From the sequence record KX397371.1: DNA of 64,000 bases; one strand, given 5' to 3'. Shown here piece by piece: positions 3,136-7,026 of the stretch. The notes beneath the pieces are model-generated. The model saw only the letters and a list, made by a program, of their open reading frames with translations, was not told the origin of the DNA and ran no database searches. Every line of letters starts with the position of its first letter. Position 1 is the stretch's first letter. A program made the position numbers and the translations under genes.

Positions 3136-3735
3136 GTACTGACCCAGTGCATCTTTTCGGGCTGGGTAGGGTTAATGTCCCTACCTGCGCGGTGTTCGTT
3201 AAGGCTGGTAACGTTCGCTAAGACCTATCGCATACCCGTAAGCCGATAGCAGCCGGTTACACAAAGAACTATCCATGTGGTAGGTAACCGACCGTTCACG
3301 ATCTCATTAGGTGAGCAAATAATCTATGCAAGGACTTCTAGGATTTGTGCTCGACATGATGGGCAGCTTACGCCGCCTCATCAAGCAGTTACGAATCTGG
3401 AAGCTTGCCCATTACTGGTTTACAGGCGAAAAGGCATCTCGTGAGAGTGTGCCATGCAAACTGCGTATTTACATTAGTATGTTCACTGCGGTGAGCATAG
3501 GTCAAGCCCCGGAACGATAAGCCGGTCAGCTACGCCTGTAAAATACAATCTGAAAATCATAATGGGATTAAGTTCCCAGATTTGAAAAGGCGACTGTGTG
3601 TCGTCGGCGATAACCCCCCGTCGTGGACTCGGTTATCCCAAAGGTAATGTGAAAGGGGTTGGTGCTTGGAGACGCTAAGACCGGCGGATACGCTGGCTCA
3701 GAAGAAGAAGTCCATCAACCCCGTTCTCACCTGAG
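3136..3735 (+). ncRNA. candidate large ornate non-coding RNA (~600 nt)
   Basis: Region without a credible CDS, starting at a TATG; more than 10 stems including long-range 3419-3428/3533-3542, 3655-3663/3714-3722 and 3307-3312/3729-3734, plus loop pseudoknot GGACTTC/GAAGTCC. Confidence 0.7.
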
Positions 3736-3744
3736 TAACACCCT

Positions 3745-3767
3745 TTACAAGGCGTTACTTATATATG
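3745..3767 (+). promoter_or_regulatory. middle/late-type promoter (TTAC-N15-TATG)
   Basis: TTAC 3745-3748 and TATG 3764-3767; same spacing as the other copies. Confidence 0.55.
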
Positions 3768-3789
3768 CGAAAGCGAGGTGAACATGGGA

Positions 3790-4110
3790 ATGTATCGTGA
3801 AGGCCCTGAAAGCACGGTGAGTCACCGTAGTCATGATTACTCTGTGGATGCATTGCTGGATATAGCGGAACGCCATAGCCTCGTTCAAATTCCAGTGTCT
3901 AGAATAGAATGGATTTTAAACGAGACTACGCTCGATGACGAGCGGGTTAAGAATGCAGATACGGATTATCCAATAATCGTGCTGCACGAAGGAAGTTTGT
4001 ATATTGTATTAGACGGTGCCCATCGCCTTGCGAAGGCGGTAGCCGAAGGCAAAGACACCATCGCAGCCAAGATATTGGTGCCTGCGAATTTACCGAAACC
4101 GGTACGATAA
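3790..4110 (+). CDS. ParB/sulfiredoxin N-terminal-domain protein
   Basis: YPIIV...VLDGAHRLAKA matches the ParB/Srx DGxHR motif; GAGGTG SD 9 nt before ATG 3790. Confidence 0.7.
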   Translation: MYREGPESTVSHRSHDYSVDALLDIAERHSLVQIPVSRIEWILNETTLDDERVKNADTDYPIIVLHEGSLYIVLDGAHRLAKAVAEGKDTIAAKILVPANLPKPVR

Positions 4111-4116
4111 AAGTCT

Positions 4117-4141
4117 AATTACAAGTTTACACTGTATTATG
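4117..4141 (+). promoter_or_regulatory. middle/late-type promoter driving the tRNA/ncRNA cluster
   Basis: AATTAC 4117-4122 and TATG 4138-4141; upstream AAAGTCTAATTACAAG is identical to the promoter at 834. Confidence 0.7.
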
Positions 4142-4223
4142 TCGGAAACCCGATTTGATGTTGCACAGAGCGTTACGCTGCGGCGTTTGCTGGTGTGCAG
4201 GGTTAGGTCGGGATTCTGGCACC
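4141..4223 (+). ncRNA. rod-like small RNA ending in ACC
   Basis: Starts at the predicted +1 G; 4141-4156 pairs with 4205-4220 (one mismatch); TGCAC/GTGCA inner stem; followed by ACC. Confidence 0.5.
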
Positions 4224-4228
4224 TATTT

Positions 4229-4314
4229 GGCGGGTTACTCAAGCGGTCAACGAGAGCAGACTGTAAATCTGTTGCCTTCGGGCTTCGTAGGTTCAAATCC
4301 TTCACACGCCACCA
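4229..4314 (+). tRNA. trnY: tRNA-Tyr(GTA)
   Basis: Class II cloverleaf, CTGTAAA loop, long variable arm, CCA; G5·A68 and T·T mismatches. Confidence 0.9.
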
Positions 4315-4320
4315 AACAAT

Positions 4321-4538
4321 GGTACCTGTCACAGCAGCCCTTGAGGCTTACGCGATGATGACTGGTCGCCCATTTTACCGGGTAACACATTCCTGCCAGC
4401 GCGCTATTGCCGCGAAGGTTTGCCCCCGGTGTTGTGCGTTATTCGGGTCTACCCACCATCTGCGGATGGTGCGTTGATGTCTCGATATACGCCATAGGGA
4501 CGCCTTGAGAACTCCGTGAAATTCGGAGAGGTACCACC
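4321..4538 (+). ncRNA. tRNA-like acceptor/T module enclosing a ~180-nt structured insert
   Basis: GGTACCT (4321-4327)/AGGTACC (4529-4535) followed by ACC; adjacent 5-bp stem with 7-nt loop CTCCG-TGAAATT-CGGAG. Confidence 0.6.
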
Positions 4539-4540
4539 CA

Positions 4541-4609
4541 TTCTTGTGTTTCCTTATCCTGAAGACATTCGTAAGACAAATCCATTCATGGTCGAGGAAA
4601 CACAGAACC
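4541..4609 (+). ncRNA. small RNA element copy A (paralog of 5843-5913)
   Basis: 13-bp closing stem (1 bulge) TTCTTGTGTTTCCT/AGGAAACACAGAA then CC; interior shares TCCYGAA-GACATTC...CATGGTC with copy B. Confidence 0.6.
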
Positions 4610-4615
4610 TATTCA

Positions 4616-4691
4616 GGTGCTATCGTCTAGTGGCCGAGGATACTACCCTGTCACGGTAGAGACCGGAGTTCGATTCTCCGTAGCACCGCCA
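4616..4691 (+). tRNA. trnD: tRNA-Asp(GTC), copy 1
   Basis: Cloverleaf GGTGCTA/TAGCACC, CTGTCAC loop, GCCA end. Confidence 0.95.
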
Positions 4692-4699
4692 TTTTAAAA

Positions 4700-4775
4700 T
4701 GCGTCTTAGCTCAGTTGGTAGAGCGCTCCCCTGATAAGGGAGAGGTCACTGGTTCAAGTCCAGTAGATGCAACCA
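4700..4775 (+). tRNA. trnI: tRNA-Ile(GAT)
   Basis: Cloverleaf TGCGTCT/AGATGCA, CTGATAA loop, ACCA end. Confidence 0.95.
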
Positions 4776-4781
4776 AACACT

Positions 4782-4860
4782 GGTGTATGTAGTTCAGTTG
4801 GTTAGAATTCTGGCTTGTGACGTCAGAGGTCGGTGAGTTCGAATCTCCCCATACACCCCA
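4782..4860 (+). tRNA. trnH: tRNA-His(GTG)
   Basis: G-1:C73 pair, TTGTGAC loop, CCA end. Confidence 0.95.
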
Positions 4861-4867
4861 ATTTAAT

Positions 4868-4944
4868 AGTGCTGTAGTCGAGCGGTTTAAGACGCCTGCC
4901 TGTCACGTAGGAGATCGTGGGTTCAAATCCCATCAGCACTGCCA
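4868..4944 (+). tRNA. trnD: tRNA-Asp(GTC), copy 2
   Basis: Cloverleaf AGTGCTG/CAGCACT, CTGTCAC loop, GCCA end. Confidence 0.95.
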
Positions 4945-4950
4945 CATTAC

Positions 4951-5027
4951 ATTCCCGTCATCTAGTTGGTCCAGGATACGACACTTTCACTGTCGGTACA
5001 CGAGTTCGAATCTCGTCGGGAATACCA
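4951..5027 (+). tRNA. trnE: tRNA-Glu(TTC)
   Basis: Cloverleaf ATTCCCG/CGGGAAT, CTTTCAC loop, ACCA end. Confidence 0.95.
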
Positions 5028-5032
5028 TTTGT

Positions 5033-5123
5033 AGAGAATTGACTGAGTTGGTTTAAGGTGCTCCCCTGCTAAGGGAGTGTATGCGAAAGTGTACCATTGG
5101 TTCGAATCCAATATTCTCTGCCA
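5033..5123 (+). tRNA. trnS: tRNA-Ser(GCT)
   Basis: Class II cloverleaf AGAGAAT/ATTCTCT, CTGCTAA loop, long variable arm, GCCA end. Confidence 0.93.
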
Positions 5124-5161
5124 TGTTCTCTTGCTGTGGGAAATAGAAGCGAACGTAGAAA

Positions 5162-5240
5162 CGCCGGTTAGCTCAAAGCTTAGAGCGTCTCATCTTCGGA
5201 TGAGAAGGTTGGGGGCGCAACCCGAAATCCCTATCGGCAA
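5162..5240 (+). ncRNA. anticodon-less tRNA-like element (UUCG-capped anticodon arm)
   Basis: GCCGGT/ATCGGC acceptor, TA-GCTC...GAGC D arm, TCTCATC-TTCG-GATGAGA arm, enlarged T loop, no CCA. Confidence 0.6.
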
Positions 5241-5500
5241 CGGCCTGCTTGTCAGGATTAGAAACATCTACGTGGATGGGTACTTCTACAGCAAGAACAA
5301 AACAGTGGGAGCATTGTCCACTGTGACACCGGCAAAGGTTTCGACCTTGCGGGTTGGGCGGAAGCCCGATGTTCCCCCGAACGCTGGCCTTCTGGCCAAT
5401 ACAGTGAAAGCTTACCCTTGCCGATGATCACCTCTTCTGCTGCTGCCAACACACTGTATAACCAGAATCAGTCCTGCCTTAAATGGCAAGCGTTCACCCT
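5241..5500 (+). ncRNA. candidate structured RNA between tRNA-like modules
   Basis: Hairpins ACAGTGG/CCACTGT, AGGT-TTCG-ACCT, GGGC-GGAA-GCCC and ATACAGTG/CACTGTAT; no credible ORF. Confidence 0.45.
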
Positions 5501-5504
5501 TTAC

Positions 5505-5582
5505 GTTTCCTCAAGGCGGCTTGGGGTGTTATCTCTCGGCTCTGTTGGGTAACATCGTGGTTCAACTCCATGGGAAACACCA
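5505..5582 (+). ncRNA. tRNA-shaped RNA with canonical T loop and ACCA but no anticodon loop
   Basis: GTTTCCT/GGGAAAC then A-CCA; CAAG/CTTG mini D stem; ~9-bp arm with 12-nt loop; GTGG-TTCAACT-CCAT. Confidence 0.65.
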
Positions 5583-5588
5583 AACAAT

Positions 5589-5680
5589 GGCTCCGTAGCT
5601 AAATCGGTAGAGGCAGACTTTAATTAGTTCTCCAACGATTTTATAATCGCGTGGTGTAGGTTCAAGTCCTACCGGAGCAA
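5589..5680 (+). pseudogene. degenerate tRNA with two central hairpins and no CCA
   Basis: GCTCCG/CGGAGC acceptor and perfect T arm GTAGG-TTCAAGT-CCTAC; broken D stem; no 7-nt anticodon loop. Confidence 0.55.
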
Positions 5681-5756
5681 GAGCACTGCTGTTAAGTTGG
5701 TTAACACCCGACCCATACTCGGATATTCGCACGTTCGATTCGTGCCAGTGCTCGCC
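5681..5756 (+). tRNA. atypical tRNA with CAT anticodon (Met/Ile2-like)
   Basis: 8-bp acceptor GAGCACTG/CAGTGCTC, 5-bp D stem GTTAA/TTAAC, CCCATAC loop (C33), canonical T arm, G-CC end. Confidence 0.7.
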
Positions 5757-5764
5757 CTTATTTA

Positions 5765-5840
5765 GACTCTGTAGTTCAGTTGGTAGAACGGTGGACTGTT
5801 AATCCATATGTCGCAGGTTCGAGTCCTGCCAGAGTCGCCA
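5765..5840 (+). tRNA. trnN: tRNA-Asn(GTT)
   Basis: Cloverleaf GACTCTG/CAGAGTC, CTGTTAA loop, GCCA end. Confidence 0.95.
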
Positions 5841-5842
5841 CA

Positions 5843-5913
5843 TTTTGCATTGCCCGAGTCCCGAATGACATTCCGGAAAAATATCATCCATGGTCACGGG
5901 CAGTGCAGAACCA
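5843..5913 (+). ncRNA. small RNA element copy B (paralog of 4541-4609)
   Basis: 14-bp closing stem TTTTGCATTGCCCG/CGGGCAGTGCAGAA followed directly by CCA; conserved interior. Confidence 0.6.
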
Positions 5914-6111
5914 AAATCCCAGCCTTCGCAGAAAAAGCTTACCTGCATTAGCGGTCCCCTGCGGGGGTTGGGTACCACCTTTGTCCGTTTTGTTTTTTTC
6001 TTTCAATTGCCTGGCGGTATTGGTGGGAACAAAACGGGTAAAGCCCTAGCGGGGGAAAAGCCGTTAACAACAACAGAAGCAGTAAAAACAGAAGTAAAAG
6101 CAGGAGTAGTT

Positions 6112-6924
6112 ATGTTTACTATCTTACGCAAAATCAATGGTAACCGCACACCAACCGAACACGAATCCCCTACGCTGGGTGATACGAAGTCACAAGTGTT
6201 CAAAGATGCGATGTCGCTTCTTACCGAATCCAATAACGTGCATAACTGCATGGATTCTGGGATGGATGCGAAGCCGTGGATTAACGGCAAACCCAAACCG
6301 ATTGAGGAGTGGGTAGAGCGCTTTAAGAAAGCGTACGGCGCGACAGACTCAGACAACCAAGAACTGGTTTCTCTGGTCAGTGAACTCGCACCGGGAATGT
6401 TTGACAAAGCCAATGCGCGTTTTGCATCGGACTTTGGTCAACTGGAAGAAGCCTTCCTGAAAGATACCGGGCAAACTATCATCTGGAAATGTCCGAACGG
6501 ACTCCCGATTGATATCCAGTTCCAAAACATTCCCCGTCAGTCTGTTGAAACACTACATACCACGCTCGATTTCATCGAAGCGGATGAGTTGAAGTTTGCG
6601 GTGTTCAACAGCAAGGCGTTGTGGGATGGGTATAACTCCGCTGAACTGTTTGGCGGTGAAGCCACCGAGATTTCCTCGGTAGAACTCCAACACGTTTACT
6701 TTGACGATACGGCCATGCCGCAAGAAGCGGTGCTCAAAGCCAACCGTCGTGGTACCCGCACTATGGAACAGGTCATCGGGGTGCTTGCTTATGGCAGCTC
6801 CGAACAACCCGACCCAACCACAGGCAACGTGCCGGTCACAGTGATGACCTACGAGTTTATCTACCAAGGCGATGAAGTCTACATTACGAACCGTCACGGT
6901 AAGACTGTGGACTCCATCCGTTAA
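6112..6924 (+). CDS. hypothetical protein (270 aa)
   Basis: AGGAG SD before ATG 6112; the upstream part of ORF-track 5890..6924 is probably non-coding leader. Confidence 0.8.
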   Translation: MFTILRKINGNRTPTEHESPTLGDTKSQVFKDAMSLLTESNNVHNCMDSGMDAKPWINGKPKPIEEWVERFKKAYGATDSDNQELVSLVSELAPGMFDKANARFASDFGQLEEAFLKDTGQTIIWKCPNGLPIDIQFQNIPRQSVETLHTTLDFIEADELKFAVFNSKALWDGYNSAELFGGEATEISSVELQHVYFDDTAMPQEAVLKANRRGTRTMEQVIGVLAYGSSEQPDPTTGNVPVTVMTYEFIYQGDEVYITNRHGKTVDSIR

Positions 6925-7026
6925 GCATTAGCATGCTCGCTAATACCCGCCCTGAGGATTGGCCTCCTCATGCTTGAAGGGCGACTCTCCTGTAGTACGC
7001 TTTGTAAGTCGACGTAAATCGGTACG

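Follow-up and report, generated by a model that had tools for sequence, protein, structure and literature searches.

We examined a stretch of 64,000 nucleotides (nt) of sequence record KX397371.1, hereafter the window, and focused on two copies (A and B) of a small hairpin RNA that lie in its transfer RNA (tRNA) array. Positions 4200–6100 of the window were 100% identical, at the same coordinates, to Erwinia phage vB_EamM_Parshik (KX397371.1). This jumbo phage of the SPN3US group has a genome of 241 kb and is classified in the genus Machinavirus. The array in which both copies are embedded occupies 4229–5840 on the + strand, and comprises nine tRNAs detected by ARAGORN (which additionally called a tRNA-Trp at 883), a tRNA-Met-like gene at 5682–5753 and non-canonical tRNA-like genes. 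All the tRNAs of the array encode their CCA and lie on the same strand as the hairpin copies.

Each copy consists of a closing stem of 14 pairs, an interior of 38–40 nt and an A-C-C tail. Copy A (4541–4610, + strand) was delimited by its fold and by covariance models (74.7 bits with the model R2, described below); it is located directly 3' of a CCA (4538–4540) and 5 nt 5' of tRNA-Asp (4616). According to the fold, its closing stem is formed by a 5' strand at 4541–4555, with one bulged U, and a 3' strand at 4594–4607. The conserved interior, delimited by sequence and alignment, takes the 38 nt in between (4556–4593), and the tail reads A-C-C-T (4607–4610), its A being either part of the last stem pair or a discriminator-like base. 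Copy B (5843–5913, + strand; fold, and 92.4 bits with R2) begins 2 nt 3' of the CCA of tRNA-Asn, the last tRNA of the array, which ends at 5840. The strands of its folded closing stem were found at 5843–5856 and 5897–5910, while sequence and alignment placed its conserved interior of 40 nt at 5857–5896 and its A-C-C-A tail at 5910–5913. The folding energies were -21.7 kcal/mol for copy A (4541–4609; z-score -4.28) and -26.4 kcal/mol for copy B (5843–5913; z-score -4.09), and none of 200 shuffles equalled either of them.

An earlier note on this DNA had described the two segments as diverged copies of one RNA, and the letters that it quoted are in place: both copies end in GAACC, and copy B continues with A. 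The motif GACATTC, followed 10–30 nt downstream by CATGGTC, was present at exactly two sites in the 64 kb, namely the two copies (expected number 0.06), and two matches were obtained in none of 100 shuffles. A first covariance model, built from copy-B orthologues only and with the closing stem as its sole structure, recovered copy A with 31.4 bits (E = 1.2e-6 in the 64-kb window) and nothing else in the window besides the reverse strand of copy B itself. The shuffle test of the motifs and this independent model therefore establish that the similarity between A and B is real. The same note had called the stem fully covarying; both stems do pair, but the description is overstated, because 5 of the 14 pairs differ on both sides between A and B, 2 differ on one side and 7 are identical. 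The two copies share 68% identity in the interior and 57% in the stem. The interior of copy A was 85% identical to that of the single copy of phages Caitlin and Asesino, and 68% identical to that of Parshik copy B; judged by these identities, A and B are old paralogues with no recent duplication behind them. The whole 241-kb Parshik genome contains exactly these two copies, both in the tRNA array.

The family was extended with a second covariance model (R2) and low-stringency BLAST, with 20 sources searched. Across 19 phages from four genera it now counts 25 members, of which 18 are distinct, and all members are located on the strand of the tRNAs. Both copies have orthologues in Huxley, Machina, pEa_SNUABM_10, pEa_SNUABM_6, pEa_SNUABM_42, pEa_SNUABM_43 and pSal-SNUABM-04, whereas every further relative that was fetched has one copy, except for SPFM1. 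In particular, a single copy was found in other members of Machinavirus (ChrisDB, Caitlin, pEa_SNUABM_4 and pEa_SNUABM_9), in Wellingtonvirus (Kwan and pEa_SNUABM_11), in Erskinevirus (Asesino), in Seoulvirus (pEa_SNUABM_29, SPAsTU, SPN3US, Proteus phage 7 and MET_P1_082_240) and in Salmonella phage 1252 (no genus stated in its record). The single or B-type copy invariably occupied the distal end of the array, and copy A was confined to a Parshik-like subgroup. In Salmonella phage SPFM1 (L179) the linear record ends in what looks like a divided and rearranged hairpin, probably an effect of the point at which the record was opened or of the assembly.

Outside these phages the searches returned hardly any member. 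A scan of IMG/VR with a loose GACATTC...CATGGTC pattern gave 119 loci, all of them chance matches and none with the upstream motif or the closing stem. Two IMG/VR scans with interior motifs recovered only known isolates and a few Wellington-like contigs, a metagenome scan with one interior motif recovered only three real contigs, also Wellington-like, and a scan of one genome per bacterial species with the other interior motif recovered no real member; these interior-motif scans demanded an exact match, so divergent members could escape them. There was also no match in a BLAST search against 5,426 Escherichia coli genomes. Judging from these searches, the family looks confined to this phage clade. 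In a metagenome contig (Ga0308167_1000066; L262), a Wellington-like variant departed at two positions from the otherwise conserved G-G-T-C located 5' of the 3' strand.

The closing stem was examined in a model-guided alignment of the 18 distinct sequences. Standard pairs made up 94.7% of the stem cells, against 38–61% when the 3' partner was slid by one to three columns, and changes on both sides were found at 10 of the 14 pairs; none of 500 shuffles attained any of the five stem measures. Because the aligned sequences come from close relatives, these counts overstate the number of independent events. Pairs of G with U were frequent at five stem positions (in 11, 4, 6, 2 and 5 of the 18 sequences, respectively), which fits an RNA of the + strand, unlike one of the other strand, where these positions would be mismatches, or a DNA cruciform. 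The stem counts support the proposal of the earlier note that the copies represent a functional structured RNA family, with a conserved core carried on a covarying helix with a CCA-type tail.

Conservation was of another kind in the interior. Five of the seven letters of the GACATTC of the window were invariant across the family and a sixth was nearly so, and both the T-C-C located 3' of the 5' strand and the G-G-T-C located 5' of the 3' strand were kept in at least 90% of the sequences. In total, about 25 interior positions are shared by the old paralogues while the stem drifts. A helix extension proposed by hand, with a G-C or A-C opposition, a U-U mismatch, two C-G pairs and three more pairs, fitted all the sequences; based on this model, the interior probably continues the helix through the U-U mismatch and the two C-G pairs up to an apical region.

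The tail and the size of the hairpin recall a tRNA. An A-C-C directly 3' of the stem was present in 17 of the 18 distinct sequences, followed by A in 9, C in 5 and T in 3 of them; since this next letter varies, it is a purine-C-C that is conserved and not a full CCA. Both copies combine an acceptor-type helix with a single-stranded N-C-C-A-like end, as tRNAs (RF00005) do, with A-C-C-A in copy B and A-C-C-T in copy A. A cloverleaf with anticodon arm and T-loop was absent: there was no ARAGORN call and no RF00005 match at E<=10 at either copy, while 10 neighbouring tRNAs scored 31–76 bits in the same Rfam search. No other Rfam family matched either copy, at the gathering threshold or at E<=10; hammerhead and other ribozymes, anticodon-loop mimicry and T-loop mimicry were considered and dropped, as none had an Rfam match. 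An intrinsic terminator scan found no site at either copy, the tails being ACCT and ACCA without a U run. Size, position and tail could also be those of a tRNA gene that has decayed and lost its function, and the array does contain other non-canonical tRNA-like genes. Such a dead gene would be expected neither to keep its stem paired across four genera nor to show no residual cloverleaf signal at all, and both paralogues are better kept than what surrounds them: among close relatives the copies were 93–100% conserved, as against 89–92% for the surroundings in the more distant of these relatives. Given the conservation across four genera, a decayed tRNA is very unlikely.

With respect to placement, each copy is a tRNA-array module that begins right behind an upstream CCA end, a context that the earlier note had missed. 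The hairpin started 0–2 nt after a CCA in 16 of the 18 distinct members, this CCA being that of tRNA-Asn or of a tRNA-like gene; the CCA at 4538–4540 before copy A is the end of a structured non-tRNA stretch of 220 nt. In pEa_SNUABM_11 the upstream CCA lay about 6 nt before the hairpin, and in Salmonella phage 1252 a gene for an HNH endonuclease stood in place of the upstream tRNA, with the hairpin kept. HNH genes sit within the arrays of relatives, in one case immediately before the hairpin, and could also be taken as a sign that the hairpin acts as DNA, for example as the target or boundary of a homing endonuclease or as a recombination site flanking a tRNA cassette; the two copies do bracket most of the array, and array content differs between relatives. 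Compensatory changes that keep the pairing are not accounted for by such a site, the many G-U pairs are explicable only in an RNA read from the + strand, and neither the A-C-C tail nor the abutment on a CCA has a rationale at the DNA level. We consider a DNA site highly improbable because of the G-U pairs and the tail. The hairpin is a feature of the + strand RNA, with a covarying stem, a tRNA-like placement, a tRNA-like tail and conservation across four genera.

Taking anatomy and placement together, we propose, with about even confidence, that copies A and B are genes for a small structured passenger RNA of the tRNA array, which would be excised by tRNA processing and whose interior would act in trans. 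The hairpin would be transcribed together with the tRNAs. Host ribonuclease P (RNase P), reading the acceptor-like helix and the purine-C-C, would then cleave at the base of the helix and generate the 5' end, a step that we infer from anatomy alone, and the same cut would set free the CCA at the 3' end of the upstream tRNA. Trimming would shape the 3' end of the hairpin, and the CCA would be completed where the last A is not encoded. The expected outcome is a stable CCA-tailed RNA of about 70 nt. Its conserved interior might be the working part, and might act in trans by binding a protein or, less likely, an RNA. The phage protein gp204, annotated as 'elongation factor Tu', was considered as a partner and dropped because it had no Pfam support.

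Bacterial RNase P RNA recognises the determinant purine73-C74-C75 by pairing with its L15 loop, and both hairpin RNAs and phage-induced small RNAs are known RNase P substrates (PMC4919922). The copies show the corresponding features, that is, a helix of 13–14 bp and a 3' A-C-C able to pair with the L15 loop. An excised RNA with a job of its own is suggested because the interior is better kept than the stem between the old paralogues (68% vs 57%), because two interior types coexist in one genome, and because the hairpin persists in SPN3US-type phages that have been stripped of most of their tRNAs.

The strongest rival is a module that acts purely in cis and has no function of its own. The hairpin would then serve as a cleavage site that frees the 3' end of the upstream tRNA, which reverses the logic of MALAT1/mascRNA, or as protection for the 3' end of the array. 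The abutment on the upstream CCA is what such a module predicts. In addition, copy B is the last module but one before a T-rich stretch, followed only by a long hairpin (X, see below), and in SPAsTU the copy is immediately followed by another long hairpin, whose tail is of the ACCA type. A cleavage handle would not, on the other hand, need about 25 interior positions to be kept while the stem drifts, nor two interior flavours in one genome. Copy A lies in the middle of the array, where the next tRNA, about 75 nt past the CCA, could itself offer an RNase P cut, though not an abutting one; and Salmonella phage 1252 keeps its hairpin with an HNH gene in place of the tRNA that was to be freed. We therefore hold a purely cis-acting module to be possible but doubtful.

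Several observations weigh against an excised RNA that acts in trans, in addition to the relatedness of the aligned sequences. RNAalifold predicted only the closing stem, and the interior is conserved in sequence without visible covariation. The pairs of the proposed extension were almost invariant, with a both-sided change in one pair only (an A-U/G-C switch in two sequences, with A-C in six), so that covariation cannot test the extension. With no T-loop or cloverleaf, RNase P is left with helix and tail alone, and the helix has 13–14 bp as opposed to the 12 bp of the stacked acceptor and T arms. A duplex scan for a complementary target in the window gave chance-level matches, the best with 11 contiguous nt, of which about 0.9 are expected by estimate. 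Finally, these phages are relatives of nucleus-forming phages, and if transcription is compartmentalised, access of host RNase P becomes an extra assumption.

Directly downstream of copy B we found the further hairpin mentioned above, 'X' (5918–5977, + strand). It starts 4 nt 3' of copy B and has a 14-bp stem (5918–5971) and an ACCA-containing tail. Inside X lies a small hairpin whose loop is conserved; the sequence of X shows no relation to A or B, and X is absent from Rfam. In eight relatives, changes on both sides preserve the pairing at 11 of the 20 pairs predicted for X, and a T-rich, terminator-like run follows X 3' (about 5985–6005). Homology between hairpin X and the region upstream of copy A was considered and rejected, as it consisted of one shared 9-mer that was matched by 31 of 300 shuffles. 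In SPAsTU the extra hairpin (L133 2582–2640) has 15 bp (z-score -6.2), is followed by AACCAACCA and lies immediately 3' of the SPAsTU copy; it is a further CCA-tailed hairpin module. It is conceivable, if rather improbable, that the hairpin family, hairpin X and the tRNA-like genes without an anticodon are all acceptor-end mimics of the SPN3US-like jumbo phages. Once excised by tRNA processing, they would engage a protein that reads the 3' ends of tRNAs, either as decoys or as adaptors. On the host side, this protein could be a defence enzyme attacking or modifying the acceptor end of tRNAs; on the phage side, it could be a factor for tRNA traffic.

Copy B, taken by itself, might instead be the opening domain of a structured leader, a regulator of the conserved gene downstream (start at 6112). 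The 200 nt between copy B and this ATG are conserved, with further covarying hairpins, and the gene is syntenic in all relatives. The leader reading is unlikely because copy A has no such gene and precedes tRNA-Asp; moreover, the T-rich stretch separates X from the gene, and the hairpin tracks the upstream CCA while its distance to the gene varies from about 160 nt (ChrisDB) to 455 nt (Kwan). All in all, we give a leader little credence. In the record the gene (gp21) starts at 5890, within copy B, whereas relatives start the homologue at an ATG aligned with 6112 and preceded by a purine-rich site; the 5' extension of gp21 over structured RNA (5890–6111) is probably wrong. A small hairpin was also found at 6040–6075 and in the aligned region of the relatives, 5' of the ribosome-binding site of the downstream gene; its two strands change together between genera, which suggests a conserved leader structure.

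We also weighed the kinship that the earlier note had suggested, in which the hairpin is a decoy like the antitoxin RNAs of type III toxin-antitoxin systems (ToxI, AntiQ, TenpI). The likeness is only a general one, that of a structured, phage-related RNA whose conserved core is borne by a stable helix. Type III antitoxin RNAs are tandem repeats beside a toxin gene, and neither feature was found at the copies: TRF (minimum score 30) reported only two unrelated runs of 11–12 nt and no tandem repeats of about 35 nt in 3500–7000, and the proteins encoded upstream and downstream matched only PHROGs of unknown function, with neither a Pfam toxin domain nor a PADLOC model among their matches. The copies also lie 1.3 kb apart among tRNAs and matched no Rfam family at E<=10. 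The lack of tandem repeats and of a toxin or defence protein nearby contradicts this kinship, which we regard as hardly credible. The wider proposal of a protein-binding decoy is neither supported nor contradicted by these results.

Among known RNAs, the closest analogues are RNA C and RNA D of phage T4 (species 1 and 2; rnaC and rnaD), by position only and not by homology. Like the hairpin copies, they are two non-tRNA genes on the strand of the tRNAs at the distal end of the cluster, with a spacing of 1 and 6 nt in T4 compared with 0–2 nt for the hairpin, and the annotated rnaD ends in A-C-C. They differ in that R2, even with the filters off, gave no match overlapping rnaC or rnaD; in size, with 119 and 139 nt against about 70 nt for a single irregular hairpin; and in the T-arm-like hairpin that rnaC retains beside its 3' strand. 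RNAs C and D are small stable RNAs, and their role is still unknown (PMC3014915).

Bacterial Y RNAs (YrlA) resemble the hairpin in that a long stem, formed between the 5' and 3' ends, bears a functional module at its distal side. No Rfam match to Y RNA or YrlA fell on the copies, and the weak YrlA matches fell on real tRNAs. A Ro/TROVE partner protein was not found among the 281 features of the record, a search that relied mostly on annotation, with about a dozen proteins scanned against Pfam. In the C4 RNA of phages P1 and P7 the ends likewise pair and the loops bear functional sequence. It differs from the hairpin in that no Rfam C4 match was obtained, C4 is not in a tRNA array, and no complementary target was found near the hairpin beyond chance-level duplexes. 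According to the account of Hartmann et al. (1995) given in PMC4919922, C4 antisense RNA is phage-encoded, of tRNA size and cut from a longer transcript by RNase P. In the case of mascRNA/MALAT1, an RNase P cut at a tRNA-like structure makes both the 3' end of the upstream RNA and a small CCA-tailed RNA (PMC4919922); mascRNA is eukaryotic and folds into a cloverleaf, and the only Rfam match of mascRNA type in the region was a real tRNA, tRNA-Asp. C4 and mascRNA thus have the logic of RNase P excision in common with the proposed passenger RNA, but not sequence, context or Rfam membership. As no homology to the described families was found, we filed the hairpin as a new, non-homologous representative of a known class, phage tRNA-cluster passenger RNAs, and not under any described family; on the evidence of its sequences it is a real and previously undescribed small-RNA family.

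The array itself contained further unusual elements. The tRNA-Met-like gene at 5682–5753 (38.9 bits with the Rfam tRNA model) was missed by ARAGORN and is unannotated in the Parshik record, while the matching gene carries a tRNA-Met annotation in relatives. At 5162–5242 there is a cloverleaf-like fold (z-score -2.8) whose 'anticodon' arm is a 7-bp stem with a loop of four bases; because its arm is capped by this loop, the fold has no anticodon. It falls within the annotated open reading frame (ORF) gp18 (5131–5427), which had no Pfam match and is probably not a gene. Another tRNA-like gene, at 5505–5583, ends in ACCA and has a T-arm and an acceptor stem of 7 bp, but its D-arm is short and its central arm measures 10 bp; it was recovered neither by ARAGORN nor by the Rfam tRNA model. 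The 220-nt stretch at 4320–4540, between tRNA-Tyr and copy A, has an 8-bp closing helix, a C-CCA end (z-score -2.85) and a hairpin of 5 bp with a 7-nt loop just 5' of its 3' strand; it had no Rfam match. Finally, genes for HNH (NUMOD4) homing endonucleases sit in the tRNA arrays of relatives (L178 1457–1996; L005 2806–3324; L132 1071–1607) and recall SegB of the T4 tRNA cluster; their insertion may explain the shuffled content of the arrays and the swapping of hairpin types.

Phage tRNA arrays are usually annotated as tRNAs and 'hypothetical proteins', and in Parshik structured RNA underlies two ORF annotations that are probably spurious, namely gp18 and the extended gp21 start. The new covariance model can be used in the annotation of jumbo-phage genomes. 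The presence of a family of CCA-tailed non-tRNA hairpins in four genera suggests that such arrays also deliver other small RNAs via the route of tRNA processing. T4 has been known for fifty years to deliver such RNAs, without an explanation; the hairpin family would add a second example, compact and independent of T4, in which the conserved positions are clear, and makes the role of passenger RNAs more tractable. If these hairpins do mimic acceptor ends, a role would thereby be suggested for RNAs C and D of T4 as well.

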